From assembly GCA_002104905.1 (NCBI GenBank), contig MCFE01000383.1:19891-83890 (forward strand): a stretch of DNA of 64,000 bases. The letters run 5' to 3'. Each line of letters begins with the position of its first letter. The stretch's first letter is position 1. The stretch is from Basidiobolus meristosporus CBS 931.73. Taxonomy: Eukaryota; Fungi; Basidiobolomycota. Below are positions 3,401 through 64,000 of the stretch, piece after piece. The notes under the pieces are model-generated. The model did not search any database, was not told the origin of the DNA, and saw nothing but the letters and a program-made list of their open reading frames with translations. The translations under genes and the position numbers were made by a program.

Positions 3401-4148
3401 ACTTGAGAGAAGACCACATCCTAACTTTGCCAATTATTGACCAATTTTACTCAAATGAGAAACAGCAGATAGCCTGTAAATTCAGCTCTCTGATGATACA
3501 AACTATGCTGGGATTCAATCAGTATCTAAGAAGTTTTACTCCAATCAAATTGATGATACTCATTCATAGATATTTGTGATGAGATCAGAGTTCAGACTCA
3601 AAGCAATTTGATCTGAAGTATGTAATTAACAGTATGAACTTATACTTAGTTATTACAGATTATATGCAATCCTTAACATATATTGGAGAATACATTAGTC
3701 CAATAAGTTAGATGGTTAATTGCAGGTTTAATTTCAACCGCAAGATACACAACACCACAGCAAGTTCATAAGTATATGAATATATTATGTGAGTGGGAGT
3801 GTTGAAATAATTAGGAGTCCACCTAATTACTAATATATTATGAACTAGCACTTAGTGAAATGATATATTTCAGATTATCAACATGGAAACTAGTTTGTAA
3901 GATATTTACCAAGTATTAGGAATTAGAGAAGTACAGAATTTTAGGAAAATCTGAAGCTTGTCCAAATGAGCTGAAACTTGGCACATGTACTCCTGATACT
4001 CTCCTAATAATGACCAAATAGTCACATTTACGTAGTTCTGCAATAAGTATAAATACTGTGTTACAACTCAATAAAACATCATGTGAATATCACGTAAATC
4101 TTCTAATTCTCCAATTCACTTCCAATATATCTCTCTAATATTTCAACA
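471..4148 (+). mobile_element. Nested LTR element with no recognisable gag-pol (non-autonomous or degenerate)
   Basis: Near-identical ~350-bp LTRs at 471-820 and 3800-4148 (TGTTG...CAACA). PBS-like GGCTTATGAGCCC follows the 5' LTR and PPT GTGAGTGGGAG precedes the 3' LTR. A 5-bp TSD GGTTC/GGCTC splits the host RNase H frame. Confidence 0.85.
2942..3310. repeat. Solo LTR of the same family as 1-215
   Basis: TGTTG...CAACA termini; clear similarity to 1-215 (GAGCATTCTGTAACAGT...AGTCCTACAGTGACTAAGACTAGC...GTCCAATATTT). Confidence 0.7.
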
Positions 4149-7100: not shown

Positions 7101-7279
7101 ACAGATGACGTATATATATGCAGGGTGTTTATTTATAGGTGTTCTGTCTCAAATGTGAGACAACCTTGATATTACTTACATCAAAAATTTGATGATCACT
7201 GATTAGCAATGGCTTTATTTGGATTGCAAAAAAAAGGGTTGTTGGGATCATTACAAATGTGAGCAATTCAAAGCAATTG

Positions 7280-8850: not shown

Positions 8851-10038
8851 ATTGCGCCAAATCAATTCAAACCGCTGTAGTGGGGTGACAGTGTCACCCA
8901 CTGACAGATGTGCTCATTCCCTTATTTTCTACTTCCCTATATCTCTACTACACATATTTTAGTTTTATTCCACTTGTCTTACCTGATCAGTACTATCCCA
9001 TAAGCCAGTTGACTATCACACCTGCTTACCTTATTGCACAAGTTACCCCTCACTTTATGTACGATTACTAGCTATAAGTGCTTCCATATTAGGCAAGTAC
9101 CCATACCAGTACCTGTGACACATGGTGAACCCATGTCACCATCCCTACCATTTCCATACCATATATGGTATCCCTATGTTACACAGGTTTCAGAATACCA
9201 ATTCCTGATTGGTTGGAAGTGCTGTGCCTCTTAGAACCTTCTGGCACCTACTTAGAACATTTTTTAGGTCATTCTGATGTCATTAAGATTTCTATTGATA
9301 TCCGGAACCTTCTGGAATACCATGCTAAGTAATCACTTTGCCAGTGAGAAAAGTATATAAGGGAGGCTATCCCTCAACAATAAATCATCATCCCTTTTAT
9401 CAATATACCAACTTGTTGATTAGTGTGATCACTGCTACCTGCTGCTACTTGAACTTCCAGCCCCAGACCACAGGACACTCCCAGGAAACCGCGCTGACAG
9501 CCAACTGACCTTGGAGGCACTACTTGTGAGGAATACACAGAGTAGGTATCTTTATTATATTTGATTCTTACCCAAGTTTGTTCTTGTACAGGCAAAGATA
9601 CATTTCTGTCTTTGTAACTATTGATCACAGCTGCATTCTTATCAAGTCCCTGCTGGTGGAGTTTACAGTTGTTTTGACTTTGGAAGCTTTAGTACATTGT
9701 CATCTCAAAGGATGCTGAACCCAGCACATACTTTTGTTAAGACGCCAACTAAGTTGGGGATTGTAGCTCAATAGTTTTCCCTTGACAAGCTTGTGGCTTC
9801 ATTCCCCTTCACATTAGATTAGAGACAGAACCCAAGTATTCCTTGCAAGCTTTTACCAGAGGTTATTGCACCCAGTGAACACCCCACACACAAAACACTG
9901 GAGAAGTGTTGGACATATCTCTCCCTTGGACCTATACACCACCACACCACGCCATACAATCATCCACCAATTTTAATATGACTTACCCATCTGAACGGTC
10001 TTTTCTCATTAATCCCATCACTACCACTAGATTTCCTT

Positions 10039-10803
10039 TTGACACACCAGAGGAGATCTATTCCTAGTACTGTGGACCATCTACCCCAATCTGACTCAAG
10101 GAGATCCCTTGTTAAGCTTCTCTGCTACTACAAGAACTGTTGCCCTACAAGGTTTCATACCACCATCCATGGCAACAAAAGTCCTAGAAGCTTTCATTCC
10201 CAGCTGACAGCAATGGAGAACCACCTTGCAGAGTATATGAATGACTTAGAGCAAGCTTGGAATACTAGGTTCAGAAGCTCCAATAGACTTCCATATCCCA
10301 GAGTGTTCAGCAACAGGTTCCATATCAGGAGTATTTTGGATACCTTCCCAGTGAGGAATAATAGACCTTCTAGAGGGCAGAGGCACTTTTATTCTGGCAA
10401 GTACAAGGCACACTGTGTGAAGTTTCAAGCACTGACTGACATTGAGGGTAACATCATCTGGTTTAGTGGGCCATTTGCTGGAAGTAGGCATGACCAAGCA
10501 CTCTGGGTAGAGAATCATCCTGAATTCAGTTGAGGGGAGAAATGTATGGCAGACTTAGCCTATCTAGGAGAGGATTGTCACAGATTAGGATGTATTACAG
10601 CTTATAGGAAGCCAAAGAATGGTGTGCTTAGCAGGAAGCAGAAGCTCTACAATGAGATATTTAATCATTTCAGAGTGAGGGTAGAGCACACATTTGGATA
10701 TCTGAAGAGATTCAGCATATTGGCAGGTAAATACAGAGGAAAGTCATATATAGGTGAAAACATCACAATAGGTAAAATTGTTAAGATACTTATTAATGCA
10801 TAG
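10039..10803 (+). mobile_element. PIF/Harbinger-ISL2EU (IS5-like, DDE_Tnp_4) transposase pseudogene
   Basis: YSGKYKAHCVKFQ..D..G...FSGP..GSRHD, ADLAYLG, AYRKP..LSRKQKLYN and RVRVEHTFGYLKRFSIL. One in-frame TGA at 10531-10533. Confidence 0.85.
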
Positions 10804-10964
10804 TATACTCATACAAGAAGACATCCACTGAGAGAAATGTGTCTGAAGCATTATGAAGAGTAAATAAAGCAAGGAAAGCACTATTCTGAGCAACATAAGT
10901 AAGATTGAGTAAAATTACCAGTAACTGTATCATACCACTGGCATCATGGTAGAAGTTATAGTGC

Positions 10965-11035
10965 CAGATAGTGCTGTAAAGTGTCAGATCAATCTGGCAC
11001 TATAAACAGGCTGGCACTATGTGGCACTATCCAAC
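10965..11035. repeat. Cluster of TAGTGCCAG/TGGCACTA motifs in both orientations (possible subterminal repeats)
   Basis: ATAGTGCCAGATAGTGC...TCTGGCACTATA...GCTGGCACTATGTGGCACTAT, about 170 bp after the transposase. Confidence 0.45.
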
Positions 11036-11099
11036 TGAACAAGTCTAATCACTTTTATTGATGATTATAGAAGATACATGTGGGTCTACTTCATGAAAA

Positions 11100-12991
11100 G
11101 AAAGGACAAAGCGTTGTCTAAGGTCAGGGGGTTTTAAGTTATAGTGTAGTGAGGGACTAGTGGAAAATTAGGAAAATATGCTCTGAAAATGTTGGAGAAT
11201 ATACCTCAAAACTCTTCATCTGCTTCAGCAAAACAAATGGGATAAAGCAAGAGACTCCTTTACTATACTCCCCACAGCAAAATGGAGTAGTAGAATGTGC
11301 AAATTGATCAATAATAGATACAGCAACAGATATGATCCATAATCAAAATTTATCTGATAATATATAGGCAGAATCAGTTGCCACATCTGTATATCTTGAA
11401 AACAGGAGTTGTAGCAGAATACTTTTTGATTTTACACCATTGAGATATGGTATAGATATAGATCAAGTGTAGGACATCTAAGAATATTTGGGTGTACAGC
11501 AAACACCAAGAAACATTCAGGGTATTAAGCAAAATATAAGCCAAAAAGTGTAAAAGGCATGTTTGTGGGCTACTGCAATGAGAGTGAGGCATAGAGACTC
11601 TACAATATAAAAGCAAAGAAGCTGATCAAGTCCAGGAATGTGCTGCTTGATGAAAATTAAATTTTCACATAAAATAACATCAGATGATGCCAAAAATTTA
11701 ATCTCAAGTCCAACAGTTGTCTGGACTGAATCAGAACAAAGCAATGAGTACTTTTTCATTCCATAGGACCCTAAAGCCATGGTTCAGCCTGATTCAGTGC
11801 CCAAGAATAGCCCAGAAGTGATTATTCCAGTGTCACAGTCCAGGAGATCTGACTTGACCAGTACTAGCACAAATTACAATATCAAAGAGGCTACAAACCT
11901 AGCCTTTGCCTATTTAGTACATATTGATGTGCCCTAGACTGTCAAAGAAGCCTAAAATAGTGCTCAGACAAAGTTGGTCAGCAGTCTGATGCATATCATG
12001 CCTGGAACATGTCCAGATATCTCATATTCCATGGGAATTGTCAGCCAGCATAATCAGAACCATGGATCTGATCATATTGCAGCAGTTAAGCAGATTGTTA
12101 GACACCTAAAAGAAGCTACTGATATGTGCTTAAAATTTAATTATAGGGATTTAGAACAGGATCTTGTGAGATACTCTGATGCTGATTGGGGACAAAACTT
12201 AGAAGACAGAAGATCCCCACAGGATACACCTTTCTTTACTGTCAAGGAGAAATCTATGGAACTCAAGAGAGCAACTAATTGTAGCATTTTCTACCACAGA
12301 AGCAGAGCATATGGCAGTCTTTGAAGCAACAACAGAAGCAATGTGGCTAACAAGGCATCTTACAAATTTAGGTCTATGTCAAAAAATACCCATTACTTTA
12401 TTTCAAGATAATCAAGGATGTAAGCTCTTGGGTAGATATCCAACTTTTCATGCTATAGCTAACTATATAGATATTAGACATCACTTTGTATGTGAAGCTA
12501 CTGAGAGTAACTTAGTTATTATAACCTACTGTCCTTCAGATGAAATGATTGCCAAAATATTTATCAAACTATCAGCTAAAACAAGTTTGAATATCCTAGG
12601 GCAAAATTAGGACTAGTCAGTTTGAATATTCAGTTCAGTGGGAGTGTTGTAGAGAATTGTAACTCCACCTAAATACCAACCTAGGTAGTCACCTAGATCA
12701 TTACCTTCATATTCCCTGGAATACTGACCGTATTCCTTGCTGGGGTTCACTGACATTATTTTCACCAAAACATCAGGTATTAAGAGCATAACATTCTTAA
12801 AGCTATCCAAACAGCCCCAAACCTTGCACACATGCTTTTGCAGCCTTCCTAAACCTATTCTATATGTTTGCCATACCAAGACCATGTAAAAGTATAAATA
12901 ATACTTTTACATTGAGAAGAGCATTTAGTGAAAACCAAATAGTCCACTTGTACTCTGAGTCACCTTCAATGTCTCCACAACTCTTACAACA
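11100..12991 (+). mobile_element. Ty1/copia relic (integrase fragment, RT end, RNase H) with 3' LTR at 12645-12991
   Basis: TPQQNGVVE-like motif near 11260; YSDADWG..DRRS (ORF 11974); FQDNQG..IDIRHHFV (ORF 12311); PPT CAGTGGGAG followed by TGTTG...CAACA. Confidence 0.85.
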
Positions 12992-12999
12992 ATTTCAAG

Positions 13000-13700
13000 T
13001 TAGATCAGCCCTCTGAGATACCAGAAAGATTTGAAAGAATGGGCAAGATATTTCCAAGTATTCATTACCTAAAGTATTTCTTACAAGTTCCATTCAGTAT
13101 TCATACTCTTATGCTACAATACAAATGCAAGAACTGAATGAACTGGATACATACTTATTCAAATAGCCTTCTGAAGCAATTTCTACTCAGAGTACACTGG
13201 AAACATTGAGAGTCATATGTGGACATTGTAAGAATATCTATCCCAAAATGGATCACTAATGCCAACTGGATACATCTACAGCTTTTATACCTGGAGCATG
13301 TGATGGCTTTGAGTATTTATACTCAAAGCATAAAGCTGAATGCATAGATCTTTGCTACTACTGCATCCATTCTCTACTCCATCTTGCTCATTGTTTGAAG
13401 AATATTGAGCCTTGCTTCATCTTTTGGGAGTTTCCTATGAGACAAGGTATGGGGAGATAGAAAGACAAATTGAGTGATAAGTACTGCCATTTCTCAATCT
13501 CATCATGAATATGACCTTCAAGTCCATCATCAATGTGGTGAGTTGGCACATGGAGCACAGCCAGGAAGAGCTGGAAAATACTGAGGAGAGATGTGCATAT
13601 GGAGACAACTATACCTTTTGCTTTAAGAAGCTAAACAGCCCCAATGCATGTGTAATCAGCTAACTGATGCAAAGTTGGGCTGGATGTAAGAAGCCACTGA
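13000..13700 (+). mobile_element. CACTA/EnSpm transposase relic (C-terminal part)
   Basis: HSLLHLAHCLKNIEPCFIFWEFPM near 13365-13440 matches the H..H...GP....W.F..ER region of CMC transposases. Confidence 0.55.
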
Positions 13701-14249
13701 TTTTTATTAGTACAACTTTACCTTAGTATGCTGAGTTTCTCCTGAGTACAAGCCAATTTCTACACCATTCAATACAGAATTCATACAAACAACAACCAGA
13801 GTGTACCTGTAAGGGGGACTAGAGTCCAGCAGGGAAAAGGAATATATTGGCCAAGTGCCTAAAGGTATTTTGCAGTTATTCAGAGGGATTCATGGCAAAA
13901 GTGGCAGCAACCAAGCATTTGTTGCAAGATGTATATGTTAACAGCAATACAAGGCACATGGCAACTTTTCAAGTATCACACTGAAAAGCTGCAAAGTTGA
14001 GGTGATAGAAGTGTATCAGTTCCAGCAGATGTGCATGTATGCTGAGGTTAGTATGCAGGAGGACAAGTTTTATTTGATTTAAACTATGTGTTGAATACCC
14101 ATGGTATTAGTGAGTAAGCAAATAAACTGGGGTGATTCTACAATGGTATATATGAATGGTGCAAGGGGAGGTAGCAAAAGAAAATACCATTTGGTAAATT
14201 GGTATGCTAACTTTATACAGTACTAGCTGTAGGCTGCCACACTGCAACT

Positions 14250-15000
14250 ATAATGCCAAGAGATATCTGCATCAAAGCTGTTACAGTACTGTCAAGTTTT
14301 TTCCATAAATGGCAATTGGATGTACTGGCTGGTTGGCTCCACTCAAACAAGTGTAGGCCACTATAAAATTATAAGAATGCTATCATAATTCCATTAAAGG
14401 ACAGTTTTGATACAGTTAAGTTTATTAACCTATTGAGCAGTAAATTCAACAAAACACCATTACAATCCCATCATAAGATTGTAAGGAGGGTCAATAAATC
14501 CAAGCTGCTGGTATTATGATAGCCTCATTGCCATATCTTTACAGTTGATCTGGATTGGATCCACCCTTGGGACCAAATTATTGTCAAAGGGTGCAGGCTT
14601 AGTAACTAGGATCACCCACCACAAGCCTTAATATATCATGGCCAAATTCTTTATGGGGATCTATGAGAGTGCTTCTACCAAGCTGCCAAGTTCCCAAAAT
14701 ATAAGAAATCTCAAGGCTGTATCAAAGTCCCAGACCTCTGCAGGTACACTCTTAGGATCTTTATTGGTCCAACTTGCCAGCAATGATAGGTTTGGAGAAA
14801 TGACCAATTTGGGTTACTTATTGCAATATGATTAATAGCATAAGACAGTATGGTGTATATGGCTTGCTCAATCACCAACCTTGACATAGAAATACATACT
14901 ATGAGGTCAATGCATGAATGTACTGTTAGAAAATAATAACAAAAGGTGGACAGATTCACTTCATAACATCAACTGATATTCAAGTATCTCAAAGCTTGAA
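14250..15000 (-). mobile_element. CACTA/EnSpm transposase relic (N-terminal catalytic part, opposite strand)
   Basis: Degenerate IDPPYNLMMG (canonical IDPMHNLFLG) near 14465-14495, with upstream YTILSY..N and QVGP motifs. Confidence 0.45.
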
Positions 15001-16164
15001 ACTCCTGATATCTTTGGTTCAAGCTATCTTGCAGACAGGCACGCACGTTTCCTACAATAATATTAGGCTAAATAGTTTACATGGCAAATTTGGTAATCAG
15101 CTAACCAATACACTCACAAAGACTTGCAGCTAAAAAATTACAAGAAAAACACCAGCAGAATGCCAGCAAAAATTCCTTTAGGTAGTGATCAGATCAGTTA
15201 ACTTGGACAGTTCACACTTTCTGTAAAATGCAGCTGGAAGATGAAAGTTGATACAGTGCCAGTTTGGAGATAATCTAAATAGCATACACCAGATCTGCTG
15301 TAGCCAAAAACCTGTCGAGACTATGCACTGTACATCTCTCCTACTGGTGTGGCTTATCATCAGCTTTGTTTCACTATTCTACATCGGCAATGTTTGCACT
15401 TTCACCAATAAAGAGAGTAAAAAGTTCCATGGGTAGGAGACGGAATGGCAGCTATGGTCCCATGATCTATTCATTACTATTCCTACCTGGTACGTAGGTC
15501 TACAACCGTGGGGATATTCAAGAATTCGTAGAGCCTAACGTATGGAGAGTTTCTATTGAGGTACAATGGGAACTTATATGTAGCATGTAAGACGAATGAA
15601 AATAATATCCATCTGGATGCGTCTTTGGTCAAGATGCGGCAGATATAGACCATTGTTGGTATAGTGGTACACAAGCTAGTGACGAGCCCCATTGACAAGA
15701 TCGAAACCATTTTGAATGTGAAGAAGGAAATCCTCTACAGTTCTGACAATCAAGCAACTGCAGATCACATCTAAGACTGTAAACTAGCCAGGGACAGGTT
15801 GACCATTGCATTCACTACGGACTGGCATGTTGTGCATGATTTTGCTCGAGAATATTATGAGGCTTGCCATTTGAGGGAACTTACAGGTTGAGCTCAAATG
15901 GCCAGAATTCGGGCGGGTTACACACTTCATGGACCATTGTATGATGGCAAATGCGGCCTCAGATAGAAGGATTCCTTATGTTAAATTTAAGCTTAGCCCG
16001 GTCGGTAGATAACAATTGATTGGGCGAATGGGCAACTGGAATGGTAGGGCAGATCGATTTCTGATCAGAAATTCACCAATGTGACGGGTACGTCCATCGA
16101 CTGAAGCCTATAAAAGGCCCCACCAATGCACCTGAGTGCACCACATCTTTGATTCTTCATTTCC

Positions 16165-47799: not shown

Positions 47800-48900
47800 T
47801 CATCAGCTCATGAATTGAACAGTACAAACTCTTGTGCAGCTTTTCTGGCACTTGCACTCATTTCCAATACTCTACTGAACCCTATCAAGCATTTTGGGAT
47901 TGGGGCTGGAGATCAAATGTATTGGCAAGAGAGCAACCAAGTGGGGATATATTGAGATCATATAGGTTTCTACATCTGCCAATCTGATACAACTATGCTG
48001 GAATAGCAATATTAACAAATAGATACAACTGATGTTGCTCACTAGTAGGCAGTATCACAGATGCCAAACCTAGGACTTGCAGATTAGACACTAGCTTGAT
48101 TGTAATATAGTGAACATTACAGCATTGGTTTCTAAGCAAAAACCTCTCCATTTCATTACAAGGAGCAGTTTGATAGAGTGGCATCTACTTGTAGTTAAAG
48201 CTTGAGTCAAGCTTAGGTAATGTGTCCCTTTTAGTGATCTCTATTCATGCTGATGATGTTGCTATTAGGATCTTAATATATATATATTAACATCCTAGGC
48301 TATTGTGCAATATCAAGTATATCAGACTTGAGGAGCTAATAAGTACTAAAAGGGTAATAAAGCCAAGAGTACTGGAGTATTCTGAGCTAGGAAAATGCAA
48401 GTGACTGCCTGTCAGTAGCTGTTGTAATATTGATTATCACCAGCTGACTGTTGAACAATCATTACCAATGGTGTGGGACTACTTATGGTGAGGACATCAA
48501 GCAATCATAAGGCTACTATAGTAAGCAATCAAGTAGCTTAGTGGTCTAGGAGCATAAAACCCCATTTGGAACCAAAGACTTTGGGGAGATAATTACATAA
48601 AAATAACATAGTGGTCAAGAGATTCTATAGCAGCACACTAAATTCTGGGCCTACAAAGATGCCTCAGCTCATAACTCAATATATACAAGAGTTGCAAAGA
48701 AGCTGGAATTGATTAGAGCAACAAGTAGAGCATATGCTTTCACTTGGCAATTTATTTAATGTCAATATGGTACTTTTACAGGTCCATGGCCAGACCAAAG
48801 TACACTGCATATTCAGGAAGACTTTAAAGTATATGTACAAAGATTAATGCATTTGGTTAACTTAGAGAATTTTTATACTCTGAGTACTTAACATCATAAT
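47800..48900 (+). mobile_element. Highly degenerate LINE-like RT relic
   Basis: IHADDVAI (YADD-like) at about 48243-48266 in a CpG-free, stop-riddled region. No other motif is secure. Confidence 0.3.
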
Positions 48901-49717
48901 GAAAATATTCTAAGCAAACCTCATCAAAGAGTATTATTCATAAGCCATTATCTAAGTGAATAAACTAATAGAGTATCTGGGTAGGAATCATAATATACAA
49001 CAGTACTTGGCGATTGGATTGCTGTCATTTTATGAAACGTCGATAAATGCTTGATTATTATAACTTGTGTTATTGTCAGGAGTGAATGATGACAGTGCCC
49101 AACTCCAAAGGGTTCGCTCAGTAGTATTCAAGTGATTGGAAATGAGCAATTGTGGTGTAAATTGGAACCTGCTATGGACTTCGGGGGTACGTAATAAAAG
49201 AATATAGATGTAGGATAGTTGCGTAATCGCCTAGGGGGGAGGGGACTTAAATAAGAAGACGGACATTCATTTAGAGTGTAATGAATGGAGGAAATAGTCG
49301 AGTCCGTCAGTGACGGGATGATATTTTTCCTTCTAGCTCAAGATCTATATCCAAACCAACTACCGACTCATAGAAATAGAGGTAGGTATATGTATGACCA
49401 TGGTATGTTGTGTGGACCAATTAGATTTTCCTATTTAGGACTTTGCTCAGCCTTTCCTTCTTTTACGTTAGGTCGTATTTAACTATGTAACTATCCCGAG
49501 TGTTACGAGAGGGTTTATTGCACAAATAGGTATGTGTACAATCAATGTCAGGGATAGGGTCGAGAGTCTTTTAGAAACAGTCAGGAGGGTCGAGAAAAAG
49601 GTCTGCCGTCTGTGTTTCTGTGAGAGGGTTTCAATATGATCGGCTGGCTTAAGCCTATTCTAGATAACGTGATGATCTTAGCCCAAGGTGGCCGAGTATT
49701 ATTAGACCGAGCAGATG

Positions 49718-49799
49718 GGTGAGATGGCCGAGTGGTCTAAGGCGCTGCGTTCAGGTCGCAGTCTCTCCGGAGGCGTGGGTTCGAACCCCACTCTCATCA
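49718..49799 (+). tRNA. tRNA-Leu(CAG): tRNA-Leu, anticodon CAG
   Basis: Acceptor stem GGTGAGA/TCTCATC; D loop TGGCCGAGTGG; anticodon arm CTGCG-TTCAGGT-CGCAG; long variable arm; T loop GGTTCGAACCC; TTTT about 8 nt downstream. Confidence 0.97.
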
Positions 49800-52674: not shown

Positions 52675-55483
52675 CTAATCACTAGCAAGAGTTCCTCGAT
52701 AACCAAGCATTGTAAATACCCCTATAATATGCTGAAATTGTAGCCATTACTCCATTTTTGTTGGAATTATATTAGTCGTCGTTGACAATACAGATGTCAA
52801 AAGTCGTACGCAATAAATGAATACTTTGAGAATTTGACTTGAATGAAATGTTGTCTTGGAGATCTAAAAGCCATGAATAGTTTGGTGCATTAGAATTACT
52901 TACAGTTTGAGTTTATTACGCGTATGTTTAACTGCTGAATTATATAATTCCATAAGATTGACAAGGATTGAAGGTGGCAGTGATATACACACAACAGCCA
53001 AGAAACTAATGGTCCACCATCTACATAAGAGCAGCGGTGCTGTGCTTCAAGAAATAGCCGTGTCTAACCGCAAATAATAATATGCTATTACAACCTGACC
53101 ATGTTGCCAAATTGCGTGATATTTTAGTAAACAAAGTTAGGATACATATGTCTTGGTTACATACATACAAAAATCAAGTTGTCATACCATGTTACACTAG
53201 ATCTCTATGCACCAGTAGAGAATATAGCTATGATCATTAGCAATATTATTGCGAGAACTTAAGGCTGTTAAAGATTTGGGGAAATCGTTAAGTTAGCAAC
53301 GGAGTAATAAAAACCAAGAGTACTAGAGCATTCAGAGGTTGGCAAGCCTGAGTGGAGAGTCATCAGTAGCCGCTATGATAAAGTTCGACTTGAAATTAAG
53401 AAGTCATAGATTTTGATTGATATTGTCAGAAAACTGTGATCGTAATCAACCACGAATGTCATTTTGCAATCAATACTTGTGATTCTTGGCTGTTTCTCGA
53501 GATATTTAGTATTTGTTGGAAAACAAAGACTGAGAGTGTACTATATACGTAGCCCTGTACAGTTGTAACGTACTAAACCACAGATGCACCATATTTATAG
53601 GAAAATAACGGTTGTTTGGCACATGGCTCATTGGCTTAGGCTACCTCGGAGTCACCGAGTGAGGTAGCGGAAATTGCTTGCAAAGAAGCGATGGCGGAAG
53701 CTAGTACGAGGGGGAAAGCTGCGTGACTGGCTTGTGGAGTTTCATTTGAAATTCCATTTTATATCAGCTTCTCAATGCCGTTCAATTAGGCATCGCTCAT
53801 AGCACTATCTTTATGCGAGCTACATTGATTTAATCTGGGTGCCCAATAGTTTACTACTTTGCCTCTTCGCACCAAGGCTACACAGTGTAGGATTCACATG
53901 TGATAATTAACAACTTGTTAATGTAAATTTATGATCACGATTTGGTCAATAGTACCCTTAATATCGTTCAAAATTCTCAATTTTTGCAGCAACTGTTCAT
54001 ACTAGTAAGCTAATCCAAAGCAGTTTAGCTAGGGCTTTGCTAACTGTTTACTAATGGAAAGTAGTCCCTGAGCTTACAAATCACTGTCGATAGACTCCGA
54101 TGCCACTACGGTTGATTTCAATGGGTCGTGACTCTCTATTCGTATCAGTGTGGCTTGCTTGGATGATACTTTGGCCACACGAATTAACATTTCTTGTGAG
54201 CTTAACATGCACGCCTTTCGGTATCTTTGTTCCATTGTCAAGCCGAGTGTATCTTACGGCAGTCCTATAATTGCTTGGAAGGTGCGATCTTTGAGAAATA
54301 CAGGCCATCGATGGCGTTGGTAATTCAAGTTTATTACGCTTGCTTGCTAGACACCTGCTCTTATATATTGCTGACTTTGACAGCCGGAGAACAGCGTCTG
54401 ATTCAAGCTCAGCCACCCACTACCACAGTCATGCCTCAGGACGGATATATTAAATTAACCTGTTATTACATGAACTTTGTTGTTGCTACGCATGAGTTTT
54501 CAATTGGTTATCTGTTGAGAAACAAGTCAAATGTGGTTGTTCACTTTATTCATGTTGCGCGATAGCTATGCTACTACAATCAGTAGCTTAGATGTTTGCG
54601 GATATGTCATGACCTGTGGACCCCGAGGTTCCTATGGTTGAATTCTCCTGAGTCTGATTTTCCGTTTTTATCAGTGTAGCCTGCCTGAATGAAGGAATTG
54701 GCATCTTCGGTGAGCTTGATATGTGAACCTCCTGGAATTTTGAGTGCAAGCAGTATCTAGTGAAAATTTCGGGTACTGAGTCAAAGTTTCCGAGCTCGTC
54801 TAGAGCTTGCTGGCGTTCGTTACTTGGGAAATTATCAATAATTTTATCCCGTACTCTTTTGATGTCCTTCAATAACTTATCCTTAGCCGGTTACGTCTTT
54901 TATTCAACAAATAATAGACTTTTCTGTAATCAATTTGCTGGTGAGACCTGTTTTGTTGAAATAGCTTTGGGAATAACCATGAGGCTATCTGTCTTAAGTC
55001 ATCAATCTTTGTCAGTGGCCTTCGCTTAAATCCATTTTTCAAGAGGAATACCACGCATTATTGCATAAATCCCGTTTTAATGGATGTCAATTTTTTGGCA
55101 TATAAATAAAACTACCAAGAACTGGGAGCTACGCAAAACATACCACTGCGCATTATTTATCTGTACCAAATGGGCGCGTTTCTGGCTGAAACTGTTCTCT
55201 TTTTTTTTAAAAAAACAATGTATGCAATCTAGATATAGGGAAACTAATATGAGAAATATGGCTTAGGCAAGACAGTCATTAATGGGCTAAATCTTTGTTC
55301 CGTTTGTAAATTTTGTAATTACACCCAAATGTTCCATTAACTTGGTTACTAAGTGCATAGCCTGCAAATCACCAGGGTATCTAATATAGTGGCAAAATAT
55401 TCCATGTAAACCCAAACATGAAACTTAGCCAAAGTACTCTAAGCTGTCCAAAAGTCCCCCAAACTTTGTCTACATGTACTTGG

Positions 55484-56140
55484 TGTTGTAGGAGTGTTGG
55501 AGATACTGGAAGTGATTGGGAGAACAAGTAGATTATGTTGTTTTCACTCATAGATTTAATAAAGGTAAAAGTAGTTTTTCTATTACTACATGGCCTTGGA
55601 AGAACAAACTTGTAGAATAGGCTTAGCAAGGTCCCAAAGAGTATGTGTGCAAAGTTTGGGGCTGTTTAAACAACTTCAAGAAATCTCATGTTCTGGATAC
55701 CTGATGTGTTAGTGAAAATGCTGTGAGTAAATCTTAACAAGGAACTTAGGCAGCATCCTCTAAGATTTGTAGGTAATGATATAAGTGACTAAGCCTGGTA
55801 GATTGTTAGGTGCAAGTACAAGCTTTTACAACACTCCCACTTAGCAAAATATTCATATGCAATAGCCTTAACTGAGGTATAAGATATTCAAGTTTATCTC
55901 TAGTTAATAGTTTAGTAAGTATGTCTGCAGTCATTTCATCTATAGGACAGTAAACTAATATAACTAAGCTATACTCCACAGCTTGCCATATGATATGATG
56001 TCTAATTTCTGTATGCTTAGTTCTAGCATGAAAAGTTGGATTTCTACATAGTTGTGTACATCCTTGATTATCTCAAAATAATGTAGTGGGCTTATTATAT
56101 AAGCCACATTCATGGAAAGATTTCTTAACCACAGGGCTTC
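55484..56140 (-). mobile_element. 3' end of a copia element (LTR 55484-55833, PPT, RNase H end), truncated near 56140
   Basis: TGTTG...CAACA LTR of the 12645 family; minus-strand AGTGGGAG PPT; NPTFHARTKHTEIRHH and CPIDEMTADILTK. Confidence 0.8.
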
Positions 56141-56145
56141 TTTTG

Positions 56146-56635
56146 TAAGGGCAGGAAAGTCACCAAGGGAGGTAAAATCTTTGTTGGTATTCAGTTATGT
56201 CAAATAACAAATAAACACACCAGCTGGGAATATAATTTTCCCACAGCAAACACTAAGCTGAAAAAAAATAAATCTAAGCTCAAGTTAAGGCAGTATTGCA
56301 GAGTACAATGGAGCTCAGGTTAACAGGAGAGTAAAGTAGATAAACCTAAATATATAATACTCCTTCAGGATGTAGGTCACAGCAGGTGAAGGGGTATTTC
56401 TGATAAGTGAAGTAAGTCTTGAAGGTAAAGATACATCCAACAAGCAGGGCTTGTAAACTGGAGAATCAGGAAACTCTTTAAAGGCATGTTCAATAATCTC
56501 CCAGTAAACTGGTCAAAAACATTTTGATGGAGCTGCTTGGCGATAATCTTGTCAAGTAATATCTCCATCATGTGATTGTTGATAAATCTCATGTTAACAA
56601 TCATGGAAAGGTTGCAATCCTGTTGCTTGAGATAC
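56146..56635 (-). mobile_element. Fossil copy of telomeric ORF1 module A
   Basis: Starts with the degenerate shared signal TAAGGGCAGGAAAGTCACCAAGGGAGGTAAAATCTTTGTT and aligns with 62370-62860 (IVNMRFINNH..EILLDK..AKQ..QNV.DQF). Confidence 0.85.
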
Positions 56636-56654
56636 TTGGAGTAAGGGTTAGGGG

Positions 56655-59308
56655 TTTATATTCTTATACAGAAATGAATAAAGCTTTGTGGTACCAAATT
56701 CAGCTTGCTTTAAGTCAAATTGCACAAATAGTGCAAATTGTACAAAGAACTATGTCTATAGTAAAGTGAAAATAAAAATACTGCTAAAAATGTGTAGAGT
56801 TGATTAGGAACTTGTCAACAAATTATGATAGAAAATAAAACAGAGCTAGTAGTTGTAAGAAAGAAAGGCACCAAGAGAAGGTGTCAAGGTATACTGCTGC
56901 TTCCTGGGAGCCAGTGACCTTGCAAGAAGGCAGAAGCTCTGGTCTGATTGTAGATATGATAGCACAAAGCCTCTGGATGAGCTCCATTCATTTGAGGAAT
57001 TAGAGAAAACATTGCATATCCTTGAACTCAAAGCAGCTCTCAACATGAGAGTAGTGAAAGTGCTTCCTACTGTTGGGGAATTTGGAGCCCAAGCAAAGTG
57101 CTTTTATTTGCCACCTTATGGCCTGGAAGACAAAGAAGGACCTCCTGATGTAAAGGGATATGTGTCCTTCACTAAGTTAGTGTCTACTCTCATAGGGGAT
57201 AAGTCCAACTCTGTCATTTAGGTAGTGACTCTTGAGATATACTCCAGATGCCTTTTGTGCATTGCTACAGAGAGAAGTATTTGCTCTCTAGGTGGCTTGG
57301 TGCTATTGGAGACCAAATAAGATCTAAACCCATCAGAAAGTGCATCCTCTTTGTCCCCTAGACTTTGAGGTAGTTTTGACCAAATTATTAGCAATCTTAA
57401 TGATTCATATCTACAAAGGACTATTGGGCAATGCTTTTACATTGTGCTGCCCAACCCCAATACCTAATGTCTCAGATCTGAATAGTGCAGCAACTATACC
57501 AATCTGACTACACATATGCCTTGGATATTACCTAAAATGGCAGTCAGAAGCATCAACCTCCCAGCTAATATCTTCTTGTTACAGAGCTTGTAAACAGGTA
57601 GTAAGGTCAGGATCAGTAGCCAAGCATATCATAGCAGCAGTATACTCCCAACATAGACACATAAGGGCCCTGAATAGCTGTAACTTAATCACAGAATATC
57701 TTCTAGCCCCTTTGAGCTGTAGAAATTTCAAAGTGGCAGAAGCCCTTTGAATACATTTTTCAGTGTAAGCTGCTCAAGAAATCTCACTTTGATAAGTTGA
57801 GGGTCCAGTGTAGTTGTAGAAGAAAGGTTGAGGCAAAGGTAAGTTATAGAAGGAAATATTTCACACCAGCCTTGATCCAATGTATGCTAATTTAGCAGTA
57901 CTTACTTCCATACCATTGGCAGTATAAGATAGTCTGCTTTACTCAGAAAACAATAAGCTTCAGCAATTGAATATCATCAGCAAATAGCAGTGCAGTAGGC
58001 ACAGAAGCTCATAAGTCATTTATACAGAGAATATCTGCCAGATCATCAATGTAGACATTGAGCAGAACTGGTGAAAGAAACAATCCCTAGCCCCCTCAGC
58101 CTGCAGAATGAAGACAAGATTAAACCATAGACACTGATAGTGGAATAACAAGCTAAGAAAGATGAGTGTGCAATCTCAAGAAACTGATTGGATGCATGCT
58201 TGTTCTTACGCTTCTTTGGGATTTTGAGGATCACCACCATATCAGTACCTGTTTCAGGTCAACAAAGAGTCTGCGTTTTCCTGCTTCATGACCTGATATG
58301 TAAAATACCACATTATATACTACTCAATGTGCTACAGTAGAGTAGCCTCCCTGAAGCCAGCTAGTGCAGGATGAAACTGGGCTAAGGGAGAATTACTAAT
58401 GCAGTGTAATAAGGGAGGCTTCAACTATTCTTTGCACATTGGTGACAAGGCAATAGGCCTGTGGTTATCAATGAATGAAGAATTGGACTTCTTTGGCAAA
58501 GGATGAATGTGACAATAATACCAGTTTCAAGGAGTAAATGCAAGCCTGAGGTGATTACAAAAGAAAGTTTTTAAATCATCTATGATAGCTTCATTTCTAG
58601 CAAAAGCCTTGAGAATATATACATGGAGAGGGCCCAGATCAGATGATTTGGGGGAGGGATACTTGCTGATTATCAGAAGAGGAGACCTGATAGCAAACCA
58701 CTCACTATTAGGGAGGGTATTATGCATAAAGGACCCAAATGCTAAAACCCAGCCAACTCAATGGTAGTGAGGAGGTGGGTATGAATATACTTCTTGAAAG
58801 TGCTTAGGTGCATCATCCACAGCAAGGATACTAAGATGTTTAGAGCTGATTACTACTTTGACCTGGGCTACCCTCTGAGCTTGCTTGAATATCACAGCAG
58901 CCTACTAGACAGCTGAGGCAGAGTGTAGTCTTCAAAGGGGGTCATGTCTTCTAGGACCAGGTTTGGTGGGATGAGCTTAGAGAGTTTCCAAGTAAACTTT
59001 GCATTTGATCAATACCCCAGAGTGAAAAGTAGTATAGGCAGGGCCAATGGCAGCACAGATAGCTCCTATAGGAGAGTTGGATGTAGGAACTTCCTTATGT
59101 CTCTAGGAAGTTTGCTGCTGTGTTACCCCAAAGAGCACTGGCTGCCGATGACCTACAGAACATTTGGCTTCTTAAGTGACTGAAGTTGCAGCTTGAGTGA
59201 GGCAGAAACAGAAATATTCTGCATGCTAGAAAAAGAATAGGCCATTGACACCATACCAGCAATGAATATAGAGTCTGACTAACTACACATTATATAAAAC
59301 TCAAGGTG
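56655..59308 (-). mobile_element. Degenerate non-LTR (LINE) element, module D, bounded by telomere-like junctions
   Basis: IDNHRPIAL (~58455), HPA.AGFR (~58355), *GLFLSPVLLNVYIDDLA (~58040-58090), LLFADDI (~57975) and GHWLPG (~56905). GGGTTAGGGG at 56645-56654 and TTAGGGGG at 59309. Confidence 0.8.
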
Positions 59309-59835
59309 TTAGGGGGAGGAAAGTCACCAAGTGGTGAAATCTTTATTTACTTATGACAAGTATCTAAAGAAGCCAAGTTAATCTGAAGTAATTCCTAGAA
59401 AGCTAGGTCTGAGAGATATCTTCCTGGTAAGCCAGGTCTGAGAGTTGAGAAGCTGAGTGGTACTATATTTCCTAGTTAGCTAGGTCTGAGAGAGGTTTCC
59501 TGGAAAGCCAGGCCTGAGAAGTGAGAATCTGAGTATATCTGAGGTGAGTTGTACTGATTTGCGGTAGCTTGTTTGTGGCCAGAATGGCCAGTAGACTGGG
59601 GGAACTGAGGGGTATTTCTGGGCGATCACTGGCCAAATTTACTAGGCAAATTTGACCAATTAGCATTTCAAGGATTTCAGCCAATCAGAGCCTTTACTTG
59701 GCCCGATGGTTGATCAAGCCATCTCCCAATGAGCACACATCAATTTATTGATCAAATTTTGTTGGATCCAGGATTTGAACCCACAACCATGGGTATGGAA
59801 GGGTTAGGGATAACCACAAGGCTAAGTGTTCTTGG
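59309..59835 (-). ncRNA. Module B copy 1: 527-bp tRNA-headed, SINE-like structured non-coding element
   Basis: A-box TAGCCTTGTGG (59814-59824) and B-box GGTTCAAATCC (59771-59781); multiple hairpins; shared 3' signal; no convincing ORF. Confidence 0.75.
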
Positions 59836-60363
59836 TTAGGGGGGAGGAAATTCACCAAGTGGTGAAATCTTTATTTACTTATGACAAGTATCTAAAGAAG
59901 CCAAGTTAATCTGAAGTAATTCCTAGAAAGCTAGGTCTGAGAGATATCTTCCTGGTAAGCCAGGTCTGAGAGTTGAGAAGCTGAGTGGTACTATATTTCC
60001 TAGTTAGCTAGGTCTGAGAGAGGTTTCCTGGAAAGCCAGGCCTGAGAAGTGAGAATCTGAATATATCTGAGCTAAGTTATACTGGTTTGCGGTAGCTGAA
60101 TTGTGGCTGGAATGGCCAGTAGACTGGGGGAACTGAGATGAATTTCTGGGCAATCACTGGCCAAATTTACTAGGCAAATCTGGCCAATTAGCATTTCAAG
60201 GATTTCAGCCAATCAGAGCCTTTACTTTGCCCGATGGTTGATCAAGCCATCTCCCAATGAGCACACATCAATTTATTAATCAAATTTTGTTGGATCCAGG
60301 ATTTGAACCCACAACCATAAGTATGGAAGGGTTAGGGATAACCACAAGGCTAAGTGTTCTTGG
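59836..60363 (-). ncRNA. Module B copy 2 (528 bp)
   Basis: Tandem copy with the same two ends; A-box 60342-60352, B-box 60299-60309. Confidence 0.75.
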
Positions 60364-62369
60364 TTAGGGGGGAGACAGTCACCGACAGGTGAAATCTTTA
60401 TTTCAGTTGAAACAAAGAAGCCAGCGCTACTGTTGTAGCTTTGATACAAGAGTGTGTAGCTGAGGGGAATTTGTAGGTAAGTTAATAAGAAGTGATGATA
60501 GTTCTTCAGTGCTCAAGACACTGTTCAGTGGGAAGGGGGGTAGCAAGAGAGGTAAGAATGACTTGTGAACAACATTAATGAGGGGAATATGATATGGATT
60601 GATATTCATCATAAAGGGAGTGTGCTGCTGCAGATATTGCTGCCAAAGGTCTGTCAAGTACTTCAGGTAGGCCAGCTTGGGTTCTTCTGACTGCAGAATA
60701 TAGTGAGCAAACTTCTTGACTTCAGGATCTCCAAGTATAGTTCTCCAGCAGGAGCCAGGTGTTGTGTGGTGTGTTCTCTTCCAGGCCTTAATCAGTGGGT
60801 TGTTGCAGTTGTGAAGTCTGAGGTATAATCTGGTTCTAAGGTAGAGAAGTCTGATCTTATAGGGCATAAACCCAAAAGCACCAAGAATAGCATGTCTGTA
60901 GGGGCATTCAGGCAAATGAGGCACCAAGGAGGTAATGCACCATACTGCAAACTTGTCAAGCTTAGTGCAGTCTCTAGAAGTAAGAGAGAGAAGTGGTAAG
61001 CCAAATTCCAGGACAGGGAAGACAAACTGCTTGAGTAGAAGGAGGCAGCTGGGAGCTGAAGTTGTAGGAGGAGTAACAGCCAGTAGCTTGTGGAGTGCCT
61101 GTCTTGCCAGGATAATTCTCTTCTTCAGGTGTGCTCCAGAGTCTAGTCCAGTAGGAAGGAAAGGAAAGCCAAGATATGTAGCAGAAACCTGCGCAGGTAG
61201 AGTGGAGTTCTCCAAGTTGATGGGAGAGCCCAAAGGTACTGTCTTTGCAATGGAAAGCTGGAGATTATTCTTCTGCAGATACTGGTGGATGGTCTGGGAG
61301 TCTTGTTGCACATTGGAGGAGGATATTCTGATGTCATCAGCAAAGAGAGTAACCAGGCAGTCAGCTGAGAGTCTTGGGAAATCATTCAAGAAGATGGCAA
61401 ACAGTATAGGACCAAGCACAGAGCCTTGAACCACTCCATTAGGAACTGAGAACACAGCTGATTGGTCACTTGGGTGCAGAATTCTTGCTTGTGGATCCAG
61501 AAACAGAGACCTGACAAGGAGGGTGAGAGAGGTACTGGAGAAGCATTGCAACTTGGACCAAAGCAGATTTCTGTCAACTGAATCAAAGGCCTTAGTGATA
61601 TCAAACAGAACAGAGGGATACTTGCACTGGAGAGAGTGATCTTGGCTAAGTATGACTGCATATTCCAAGGAGAGGCCAGGAACAAAGCCAAACTGTGCAG
61701 GATGAAACTTGAGAGAGTCAGAGTAGAGCTCCTGAGCAAGCAGAAGCTCAAACACCTTTCTGCAGGTGGGCAGCAGAGATATTGGCCTGTAGGAGCTAGG
61801 ATCCAGGTGCTTTCCTTTACCCTTGTACAGTGGCAGAACATTTGCAAAGGACCATTCCTCAGGAGTAGAAAGCTGGGCTGAGCATTACTGAAACAGTGGA
61901 AGCAGAAGTGCAGACATGGCCTTGGTACTAGTCTTCAGAAGCTCATAGGAGATTGTGTCCACACCTGGAGCAGTAAAGTTGGGAAGCCTCTTGAGCACAT
62001 TATGGATTCTCCTTTGATCAAGTGCAAGTGGGATGGGCAGAGTCTGGAAGTCAGGATGAAAGCCAGGAGTTGAGTACTGCTTTGTAGAGAAGAAGATGTT
62101 AGCCAGCTGTTCTGTTGAAGGTAACTTCCTGGAAGAGGGCCTCATTGCCCTGTAGAGTCTTGATACTGTTCTTGTTATAGAGTTGGAAGATTGCAGAGGC
62201 AAAGAACTCATAATATGAACCCAGAGCTGAGTATGCAGAGTGTGGTGAATTGCCTTGGAGTGGTGTATTGCTGTCAGGAGGAGTTTCTCTGTTTTTGGGT
62301 TAGGGAAACTCAGGTAGCTTTGTTGCAGGGCTGAAACAATGGATTCCCATTTTCATGAGGTAACAGGGG
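60364..62369 (-). mobile_element. Module C: non-LTR (LINE-type) reverse transcriptase with no endonuclease domain in this copy
   Basis: APGVDTISYELLK, W..ANVLPLYKGKG, SYRPISLL, HPAQFGF, FDITKAFDSVDR, GVVQGSVLGPILF, LFADD and TYLGF. Frame open from about 62352 to the stop at 60427 except one TAA (61885-61887). Confidence 0.92.
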
Positions 62370-63152
62370 TTAGGGGAGGGAAAGTCACCAAAGTAGGTGA
62401 AATCTTTATTTGATTTCAGACAAGTCTAACTACAAATAAAGAAGACAGCTGGGAATAGAAGATTCCCAAAGTAAACACTAAGATGAATATGAATAAATCT
62501 AAGCTAAAGTTAAGGCAGTATCCCAGAGTACACTGGAGTTCAGGTTCATGGGGGAGTGAAGTAGATAAGCTTGAGAGATATAATAATCTTTTAAGAAGTG
62601 GGTAACAGCAGGTGAAGGGGAGTTTTTGATAAGTGAAGTGAATCTTGAGATCAGAGATTCCTCTAATGAGAAGGTCTTGTAAACTGGAGAATCAGGAAAC
62701 TCTTTAAAGGCATGGTCAGTAGGTTCCCAGTAAAACTGGTCAGAGACATTTTGAGAGAATTGTTTAGCAATACTTTTGTCAAGTACTACCTCCAGAGTGT
62801 GATGGTTGATAAATCTCATGTTGACAATCTTGGATAAGTTGTAACCTTGTTGCTTGAGATACATCCTATGCTCAGATATAGGAATAAACTCCACATTGGC
62901 AAAGTAGCAGACAGCCCAGTCAGTAGCAGGAGGCAAATCAGAAGTGGCAGGAAACTTTCTTTTGGTCTTGGGAGGAGCAGCAGGATATCTTGAGGAAGCA
63001 GGAACAGACTTTTTGACAACTTCAGAGTAGGAAGAGTGAGCAGGAGCAGATGATTCTTGGGGAGTCTTGTTGGCAGGAAGAGTTGGCTCAGGGACAATAG
63101 ATTCTTGCAGATCAGAGAAGGCAGAAAAGAGCTTTTGAACTTGTTTCTTGAG
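62370..63152 (-). mobile_element. Module A: 5'-truncated ORF1/gag-like coding module
   Basis: Frame open from 63152 to the stop at 62499: heptad-like LKKQVQKLFSAFSDLQ, SYSEVVKK, Pro/Lys-rich linker, then VCYFANV..RMYLKQQGYNLSKIVNMRFINHHTLEVVLD. It carries its own copy of the 3' signal. Confidence 0.75.
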
Positions 63153-63680
63153 TTAGGGGGGAGGAAAGTCACCAAGTGGTGAAATCTTTATTTACTTATG
63201 ACAAGTATCTAAAGAAGCCAAGTTAATCTGAAGTTATTCCTAGAAAGCTAGGTCTGAGAGATATCTTCCTGGTAAGCCAGGTCTGAGAGTTGAGAAGCTG
63301 AGTGGTACTATATTTCCTAGTTAGCTAGGTCTGAGAGAGGTTTCCTGGAAAGCCAGGCCTGAGAAGTGAGAATCTGAATATATATGAGCTAAGTTATACT
63401 GGTTTGCGGTAGCTGAATTGTGGCCGGAATGGCCAGTAGACTGGGGGAACTGAGATGAATTTCTGGGCGATCACTGGCCAAATTTACTAGGCAAATCTGG
63501 CCAAGTAGCATTTCAAGGATTTCAGCCAATCAGAGCCTTTACTTTGCCCGATGGTTGATCAAGCCATCTCCCAATGAGCACACATCAATTTATTAATCAA
63601 ATTTTGCTGGATCCAGGATTTGAACCCACAACCATGGGTATGGAAGGGTTAGGGATAACCACAAGGCTAAGTGTTCTTGG
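63153..63680 (-). ncRNA. Module B copy 3 (528 bp)
   Basis: Near-identical to copy 2; A-box 63659-63669, B-box 63616-63626. Confidence 0.75.
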
Positions 63681-63699
63681 TTAGGGTTAGGGGTTAGGG
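63681..63699 (+). repeat. Short interstitial telomere tract (TTAGGG TTAGGGG TTAGGG)
   Basis: Direct reading, between B3 and B4. Confidence 0.95.
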
Positions 63700-63798
63700 T
63701 TAGGGGGATGAAAGTCACCAAGTGGTGAAATCTTTATTTACTTATGACAAGTATCTAAAGAAGCCAAGTTAATCTGAAGTTATTCCTAGAAAGCTAGG
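63700..63798 (-). mobile_element. Module B copy 4, only the 3'-terminal ~99 bp
   Basis: Matches B3 up to AAAGCTAGG, then switches into telomere repeats. Confidence 0.9.
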
Positions 63799-64000
63799 GT
63801 TAGGGTTAGGGTTAGGGTTAGGGTTAGGGTTAGGGTTAGGGTTAGGGTTAGGGTTAGGGTTAGGGTTAGGGTTAGGGTTAGGGTTAGGGTTAGGGTTAGG
63901 GTTAGGGTTAGGGTTAGGGTTAGGGTTAGGGTTAGGGTTAGGGTTAGGGTTAGGGTTAGGGTTAGGGTTAGGGTTAGGGTTAGGGTTAGGGTTAGGGTTA
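63795..64000 (+). repeat. Telomere (TTAGGG)n, about 34 perfect repeats, running to the window end
   Basis: Uninterrupted TTAGGG array with the G-rich strand running 5' to 3' toward the end. Confidence 0.99.

Follow-up and report, generated by a model that had tools for sequence, protein, structure and literature searches.

The idea that telomerase and retroelements can stand in for each other in solving the end-replication problem draws mainly on retrotransposons specialised for telomeres, and the well-studied cases come from insects. The Magnaporthe MoTeRs carry a restriction-like endonuclease, with MoTeR2 being a non-autonomous partner of MoTeR1, and Gladyshev and Arkhipova reportedly found in 2007 that the Athena/Coprina elements lie at chromosome ends and possess 3' ends that are the reverse complement of the telomere repeat. 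Where long and short interspersed elements (LINEs and SINEs) form stringent pairs, as with eel UnaL2/UnaSINE1 and the L2 and CR1 partners, the SINE, a short non-coding element with an internal promoter of the RNA polymerase III type, carries the 3' stem-loop tail of its partner LINE, and priming involves short terminal repeats and does not require poly(A). Reverse transcriptases (RTs) of elements without long terminal repeats (non-LTR elements), such as R2, are known to jump between templates end to end. In Drosophila arrays, HeT-A possesses only the first open reading frame (ORF1) and stands beside elements that carry an endonuclease (EN) and an RT, and TART and TAHRE also keep the EN domain (PMC6581046). 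Among the TRAS/SART elements, SART1 requires three or more repeats and stays clear of the first two tracts, TRAS1 EN needs about 10 bp of repeat, and the structure of the 3' untranslated region (UTR) together with short telomere-like RNA stretches helps to start reverse transcription (PMC7265360). Here we describe a terminal retroelement array in an early-diverging fungus that retains telomerase, Basidiobolus meristosporus CBS 931.73, based on 64,000 nucleotides of contig MCFE01000383.1 (assembly GCA_002104905.1, positions 19,891 to 83,890 of the forward strand), a stretch that we call the window.

We read this array as part of a telomere-specialised community of non-LTR elements, namely a LINE with two passengers and not one element in pieces, whose copies are primed from chromosome ends, and we put the probability of this reading at roughly three in four. 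Anatomy, families, selection, orientation and junction statistics are its observed basis. The window finishes in (TTAGGG)33, 198 bp that are perfect on the plus strand (63799-64000, by sequence reading), and its 3' side is therefore the right end of a chromosome or contig. BLAST with module references revealed that the last 7.8 kb form a head-to-tail stack with all modules on the minus strand, which reproduced the order and polarity given in a first-pass annotation of the window: from centromere to telomere, fossil A, D, B1, B2, C, A, B3, three repeats, a B4 stub and the telomere. The features of the array and its base are as follows.

55809..56145, minus strand: fragment of a Copia-like LTR retrotransposon with its 5' side cut off, forming the base of the array; an open stretch of 88 amino acids
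56146..56644, minus strand: fossil A, from the ORF1-only family, an old 3' fragment whose tail has degenerated to CCCTTA (BLAST match 56146-56635)
56645..59308, minus strand: D, a heavily decayed older LINE of another family, with many stops and the junction GGGTTAGGGG
59309..59835, minus strand: B1, full-length SINE-like element (BLAST match 59312-59835, 96% over B positions 1-524)
59836..60363, minus strand: B2, full-length SINE-like element (98% over B positions 1-528)
60364..62366, minus strand: C, 5'-truncated LINE (99% to positions 1381-3382 of the copy at sampled locus L002)
62371..63152, minus strand: A, 5'-truncated ORF1-only element with its own tail (98% to the copy at sampled locus L048)
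63153..63680, minus strand: B3, full-length SINE-like element and B reference copy, with a 100% identical copy on another contig
63681..63699, plus strand: three slightly irregular telomere units between B3 and B4 (sequence reading)
63700..63798, minus strand: B4, the last 96-99 nt of B (BLAST match 63703-63798, 99% to B positions 429-524)
63799..64000, plus strand: terminal telomere tract (TTAGGG)33, contig end (sequence reading)

All of the junctions previously listed are present on sequence reading, with one moved from 62370 to 62371: TTAG5 at 59309, TTAG6 at 59836, TTAG6 at 60364, TTAG4 at 62371, TTAG6 at 63153 and TTAG5 at 63700, and on the proximal side GGGTTAGGGG at 56645 and TAAGGG at 56146. 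B2 abuts the tail of C directly, and the broken 5' end of B4 is capped straight by telomere (CTAG, then GGTTAGGG). BLAST and tblastn found no match to the A, B, C and D families in the other 56 kb of the window.

The tails of A, B and C match one another over about 40-55 nt at 80-90% identity (BLAST), such that the earlier claim of one 3' end on three bodies stands, whereas the accompanying claim that the bodies are unrelated does not, A being homologous to the ORF1 of the LINE. The common tail is built from AAUAAA, a 5-bp hairpin (TCACC/GGTGA), a pyrimidine stretch, a C-run and UAA, and can be followed in B3:

63153..63197, minus strand: example of the shared tail, with the hairpin at 63169-63182

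The same tail recurs at 59309, 59836, 60364, 62371 and 63700. The tails of A, B and C invariably finish in C(3-11)TAA, to which CCCTAA units are often added, and hence all three classes carry the telomere-repeat complement at their 3' ends; poly(A) is absent despite an AAUAAA located 33 nt upstream. Relatives from other public samples, with ORF2 identities of 48-80%, keep both the hairpin tail and a C-run-TAACCC end. This tail of hairpin, C-run and UAA, common to the three element classes, appears to be specific to this system. D ends in a tail of its own, CCCCTAACCC, which is without a hairpin.

To place the modules in their families, we searched the 89-Mb assembly (1366 contigs) and examined about 60 array loci (designated L), the top-scoring matches among hundreds of candidates. 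Searching with the 2-kb body of C returned 831 first-look candidates and at least 40 scored copies at 98-99% identity; full-length matches reach the 5' end of the query, and in those loci the upstream sequence runs on. At least 29 other copies, 99% identical, extend past the 5' breakpoint of the window copy. The copy at L002 holds a 917-residue ORF2, the first 200 residues of which lie 5' of that breakpoint, as well as a partial ORF1, and longer copies hold another 0.85 kb of ORF1 followed by a 5' UTR. Because other copies continue 5' into an APE-like domain, a stop and ORF1, we take window C to be an ordinary 5'-truncated copy of a complete autonomous LINE of about 4.6 kb, a layout assembled from overlapping natural copies and not from a consensus sequence. 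Window C itself spans ORF2 residues 271-917 (linker, RT and C-terminal part) and the 3' UTR, with premature stops at 62353-62355 and 61885-61887. The RT and ORF1, which the first-pass annotation had regarded as natively separate modules, thus belong to one element, and the RT, far from lacking an endonuclease, is accompanied in the longer copies by an APE-fold domain under selection; no family consists of an RT module devoid of endonuclease and ORF1. The LINE has ORF1 upstream of ORF2, variable 5' truncation with scattered breakpoints, no LTRs and no poly(A), and a 3' end of C-run plus TAA; its distant database matches are APE+RT proteins.

ORF1 of the LINE starts with ATG and comprises a zinc-finger-like motif (CPNCG...C.C) and a coiled coil, then a long linker that leads to a conserved C-terminal domain, with no match in Pfam. 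It shares one frame with ORF2, from which it is split by a single TGA without a following ATG (L002:4317-4345, minus strand), and in the relative L061 an ATG directly follows the ORF1 stop; together these suggest that ORF2 may be translated by readthrough or reinitiation. The assignment of the RT to the LINE type holds, with a Pfam RVT_1 match at 2.6e-25 (1.3e-25 for window C) and human L1 ORF2p as best solved relative at 6e-13, whereas an R2-type RT scores only 0.1. The N-terminal domain of ORF2 is divergent, matching Pfam Exo_endo_phos_2 at 3.5e-4, under the curated cut-off. In an alignment with canonical APE LINEs, the N, Y, GDLN (GD-N), D and SDH positions of the endonuclease are kept, while the catalytic Glu is replaced by Asp in all four family members. 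An AlphaFold2 model (pLDDT 78), the input alignment of which included canonical APE sequences, matches ExoIII, APE1, TRAS1 EN and L1 EN at E values of 1e-10 to 4e-9; when only the four family sequences were made into a profile, a sequence search of the PDB gave no convincing match, and the APE assignment is based on the wider alignment and the fold search. ORF2 is intact in 13 of 15 same-length copies, and the pooled ratio of nonsynonymous to synonymous polymorphism (pN/pS) stands at 0.11 in the endonuclease part and at 0.27 in the RT, by which measure both are under purifying selection.

The 5' UTR of the LINE (L003:250-800 and L004:1100-1560, minus strand) possesses tandem repeats of about 110 bp, followed by five CpGs in some 36 nt of an element that is otherwise nearly CpG-free. 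An internal AACCCTAACCCTAA comes right after this CpG-rich stretch, about 100 nt 5' of the ORF1 ATG, and the 5' UTRs of relatives are homologous around the site but are without the telomere motif. The CpG stretch and AACCCTAACCCTAA could represent a promoter that is free of methylation and includes a telomere-box, or else could seed the re-capping of an end.

The body of A returned 487 candidates at 97-99% identity. Full copies continue 75 nt past the 5' end of the window copy to an ATG, preceded by a 5' UTR of a short spacer and tandem repeats of roughly 99 bp (one to about seven in the copies examined), each of which carries CCTAACCC; beyond these repeats comes the next element or telomere. 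Most of the copies examined hold a 242-residue ORF, of which window A retains residues 26-242 with the stop at 62499-62501. This ORF is intact in 24 of 27 distinct copies with a pN/pS of 0.32. Over residues 106-238 the protein shares 35% identity with the LINE ORF1 in its C-terminal domain (E 2e-17), and the N-terminus is predicted to form a long helix. The conserved domain was modelled by AlphaFold2 as beta-alpha-beta-beta-alpha-beta followed by helices; Foldseek found no significant match to this model in the PDB (best E 0.07, generic RRM/ACT-like), such that 'RRM-like' would be a remark on modelled topology only, and the protein has no match in Pfam. On these features we regard A as a genuine ORF1-only element under selection that possesses a 5' UTR and a tail of its own, a counterpart of HeT-A, and as a gag-only element it would presumably depend on the RT of the LINE.

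B is 528 nt long without a long ORF, with 457 candidates at 96-100% identity; the 16 full-length copies in the sampled loci share one 5' end, and the others are truncated at scattered points. Families A and B are separate from the LINE family, in agreement with the proposal that ORF1-only and non-coding elements are mobile independently. A perfect box B consensus lies at nt 55-65 of each full B copy (B1 59771-59781, B2 60299-60309, B3 63616-63626); the window holds 5 hits to this consensus against 0.65 expected, and outside B it occurs only in a true tRNA-Leu (CAG) gene (49718-49799). A box A-like 11-mer that fits 10/11 by eye lies about 34 nt upstream. The tRNA head that had been ascribed to B was not recognised: ARAGORN found no tRNA at default or relaxed thresholds, Rfam found no match on 8 kb nor on 111 nt at E up to 10, and the single-sequence fold of the head has a z-score of 0. 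A tRNA origin of the head is therefore not shown, and 'SINE-like, with Pol III-type boxes' (Pol III, RNA polymerase III) is the designation that we consider justified. Each full B also carries a telomere-like motif between the box A-like motif and box B, about 27 nt from the 5' end, located in the window as follows.

59800-59809, 60328-60337 and 63645-63654, minus strand: CCCTAACCCT in B1, B2 and B3

The motifs in B and A would put TTAGGG-like sequence of the cDNA near the new chromosome end. The body of B also has internal repeats of about 75 nt with units like AGCTAGGTCTGAGAG (59389-59534 and each B copy; BLAST self-hits).

Evaluating the sampled loci further, we found that in 60 of 60 every recognisable element lies on one strand, that the terminal telomere tract, included in 19 loci, is always on the 5' side of the elements, and that on one contig either end carries B arrays, those of one end lying on the opposite strand to those of the other. 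Restriction to chromosome ends holds in everything sampled; target-site duplications are not definable at such ends. We infer a sequence of steps in which the LINE RT would recognise the hairpin tail, in the manner of stringent LINE/SINE pairs and with A and B depending on it, the terminal CCCUAA of the RNA would base-pair with the 3' end of the G-strand, and the cDNA would be a direct extension of that strand. Direct extension would account for 3' ends that face the centromere without poly(A), and CCCUAA pairing for TTAGGG followed by extra Gs. Copies would often be 5'-truncated, and the new end would be extended by the next element or capped by telomerase. The usual primer would be a short, eroded or freshly made uncapped end, not a random nick in a full-length telomere; alternatively, a cDNA jumping onto the next RNA would supply the end.

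The junctions bear on the primer. Across 137 non-redundant 3' junctions, the C-run varies in length from 3 to 11, and the telomere-like stretch that follows it has a median of 5 nt, is at most 9 nt in 118 and exceeds 21 nt in only 2, while terminal telomere tracts measure 113-239 bp. Tails abut truncated elements and a copia-like repeat directly with an overlap of 0-3 nt, and at 19 of the 35 junctions whose proximal neighbour is a truncated element of known sequence, the break of that neighbour overlaps the telomere-like filler by at least 2 nt of microhomology, where 7.8% would be expected (p about 1e-12). Telomere remnants as short as these, together with the 2-3-nt microhomology, suggest a short or uncapped primer end, and the junctions favour priming from such G-strand ends. 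Priming on the overhang without an endonuclease is plausible, but selection has conserved the endonuclease domain, and such priming is therefore not established.

That domain also speaks for insertion in the manner of TRAS, in which the APE endonuclease would nick the G-strand of TTAGGG duplex for target-primed reverse transcription and arrays would form since the targets are all terminal. The APE-fold domain keeps its catalytic motifs under strong selection, its fold matches TRAS1 EN among others, every 3' junction has at least one TTAGGG-like unit, and the orientation equals that of TRAS (C-strand sense; PMC7265360). Random nicks in tracts of 110-240 bp would, however, predict long remnants, and the proximal retention of some 10-15 bp of repeat expected of TRAS/SART is contrary to the 118 of 137 junctions with 9 nt or less; the repeat needs of SART1 and TRAS1 EN exceed what most junctions retain (PMC7265360). 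Tails that meet truncated elements or the copia-like repeat share only the 0-3 nt of overlap with them, and the telomere-like 10-mer in every B head is without insertions in the sample. We regard TRAS-like insertion as possible but as less likely than priming from ends.

Still less probable, in our view, is that the stacks are single events in which the RT jumps from the 5' end of one RNA to the tail of another and lays down several elements as one cDNA. Template jumping of the R2 type gives this a precedent, and it would fit the full-length B 5' ends that join the next tail without telomere repeat (B1, B2 and C in the window, and many loci), the extra non-templated nucleotides at some junctions and the variable C-run. 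Neighbours nevertheless differ in their divergence from their families (B1 96%, B2 97.5%, C 99%), and the 2-5 telomere units at some junctions need telomerase between additions.

Comparison between chromosome ends revealed arrays of differing composition, with orders such as B-B-B-C, C fragments in a row, C-A-B-B-B and C-A-A-B. The junction of A with C in the window was not seen in any other sampled locus, nor was B-A-C-B a fixed order, and the variable order that the first-pass annotation had predicted extends to copy number and truncation. Outermost copies are truncated anywhere and capped directly by telomere, one of them being just 38 nt long; this stub, at L024:3617-3660, consists of the LINE tail alone between two telomere stretches at a chromosome end, and illustrates the small size that an added or surviving copy can have. 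Identity to other family members rises only roughly outward along the array of the window and is confounded by subfamily structure. The spread of a fixed unit was rejected, order and copy number varying widely between ends, and an assembly artefact was likewise rejected, many contigs and unrelated public samples having the same junction types in different orders. The relatives in those other samples keep the ORF1-ORF2 layout and head-to-tail junctions, and therefore the system is not an assembly artefact and is not very young.

These comparisons leave little room for a reading in which the arrays are subtelomeric repeats that owe their spread chiefly to recombination or segmental duplication, retrotransposition being rare or no longer under way. 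Exchange of sequence between subtelomeres is indeed common, several array bases have a copia-like repeat, and recombination is proposed as one source of change in the Cnl1 arrays of Cryptococcus (bioRxiv 10.1101/2021.08.11.455996). Against this, order, copy number and truncation points differ between ends, the A-C junction of the window is absent from other sampled loci, copies are 97-100% alike with ORFs mostly intact under purifying selection, and reverse transcription has left its signatures in the 5' truncation, the precise 3' ends and the microhomology, making this reading very improbable. Hardly credible at all is a multipartite element with natively separate RT, ORF1 and non-coding modules and an RT module devoid of endonuclease and ORF1, since, although the window RT body begins abruptly after the A tail without either and A and B are truly separate elements, the 29 or more 99% identical copies extend past that breakpoint, the longer ones hold the APE-like domain, a long ORF1 with its own ATG and a 5' UTR, C breakpoints are scattered as in any 5'-truncated LINE, and independent relatives with the same ORF1-ORF2 layout argue against assembly chimeras.

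Several points weigh against an end-primed community of a LINE and two passengers. The endonuclease is under the strongest purifying selection in ORF2, and pure end-priming does not need an endonuclease. Internal telomere tracts could have been shortened after insertion, and interstitial copies may exist beyond the roughly 60 top-scoring loci. Separate transcripts, their 3' ends and their expression are predictions from the DNA sequence, and Pol III transcription of B, which is without a T-run terminator and a detectable tRNA fold, is only suggested by the boxes.

A match to Telomerase_RBD above the Pfam cut-off in the genome, together with perfect TTAGGG caps, indicates that a TERT gene is present and that the elements coexist with telomerase, as had been proposed. 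We consider it possible, and advance it only tentatively, that the end-primed community forms a second, retroelement-based end-healing system in this telomerase-positive fungus, in which the LINE RT would extend short or uncapped G-strand ends via the CCCUAA end of tail-bearing RNAs, the three classes would compete for that RT, and CCCTAACCCT (in B) and AACCCTAACCCTAA (in the LINE 5' UTR) would help telomerase or capping proteins to re-cap the end. If true, it would be a free-living analogue of the Drosophila system operating alongside telomerase, and B would be the first SINE specialised for chromosome ends.

Older layers lie beneath the young elements. Fossil A is 81% identical in nucleotides to the A family (median 80% against 41 other A copies) and aligns to residues 123-240 of the A ORF (tblastn); D has no match in Pfam, its RT-like remnants having been seen by eye only. 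The 88-aa open stretch at 55809..56145 holds what we take to be the polyprotein C-terminal motif typical of Ty1/copia, and the fragment has no Pfam match. A copia-like repeat occupies the proximal base of several arrays (window 55301-56146; L023, L029, L006, L012), with copies in the same orientation that are cut at different positions and a related copy at window 12389-12991; cuts at varied points are expected if ends eroded into the repeat before healing. Unmatched stretches distal of elements are repeats that recur in other arrays and therefore represent further families, at least four of which occur in one-way arrays (L045:3185-3782, L047:2393-3559, L003:4363-5003, L055:2525-3782); the family of L055 and L051 is not CpG-depleted and has tandem repeats of about 130 bp. 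In the window, the observed/expected ratio of CpG is 0.04-0.05 in the last 8 kb versus about 0.65-0.9 in the gene-bearing part, and the last 8 kb show a strong skew of G over C on the plus strand, as expected of methylated repeats in one orientation. Further blocks with CpG ratios of 0-0.27 (window 1-16000 and 48001-49000) are likely to be methylated transposons unrelated to the telomeric families.

Our observations place hundreds of young, selected LINE, gag-only and SINE-like copies with one telomere-complement tail on many chromosome ends. Full-text searches of the literature turned up neither a paper about telomeric retroelements in Basidiobolus nor an account of any SINE confined to telomeres. 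The purpose of an endonuclease at a natural DNA end is a puzzle shared with Drosophila, and the system is a tractable one in which to study what makes an RT use a chromosome end instead of a nick, and whether such elements act in back-up end repair.

Compared with known systems, the likeness to HeT-A, TART and TAHRE (jockey clade) lies in head-to-tail terminal arrays with 3' ends toward the centromere, in an ORF1-only element next to elements with EN and RT, and in an endonuclease that is kept although addition is thought to occur at the very end. Unlike in Drosophila, telomerase repeats and a TERT gene are present and the retroelements do not replace telomerase, the 3' ends are a hairpin and telomere complement instead of poly(A), and there is a SINE-like third partner in a fungal host. 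TRAS and SART (R1 clade, Bombyx) are likewise LINEs of the APE type that are bound to TTAGG(G) telomeres, their host too having retained telomere repeats, and TRAS has the orientation seen here; both have poly(A), and they require several repeats and go into the interior of long tracts, whereas in Basidiobolus most junctions keep one unit or less, poly(A) is absent, and SINE and gag-only partners share the tail. With Athena/Coprina and Terminons the system shares telomere-complement 3' ends and terminal elements separated by short repeat stretches, and it differs from these endonuclease-deficient Penelope-like elements in its LINE-type RT and its selected APE-fold endonuclease.

The nearest fungal precedents are the Cnl1 arrays of Cryptococcus and the MoTeRs of Magnaporthe, which are also dynamic LINE arrays at most ends of telomerase-positive fungi. 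The MoTeRs differ in their restriction-like endonuclease, against an APE fold here, and Cnl1 differs in that it also inserts into genes and that no SINE or gag-only partner is described in the passages searched (bioRxiv 10.1101/2021.08.11.455996). B resembles the SINEs of the UnaL2/UnaSINE1 type as a short non-coding element with putative Pol III-type boxes and the tail of a partner LINE, and differs from them in that a tRNA origin of its head is not demonstrable, that the terminal repeat is the telomere complement and that all copies seen are at chromosome ends. The Basidiobolus system thus unites features so far seen apart, namely the division of labour of HeT-A and TART, the tail sharing of stringent LINE/SINE pairs and the Athena-like ends.

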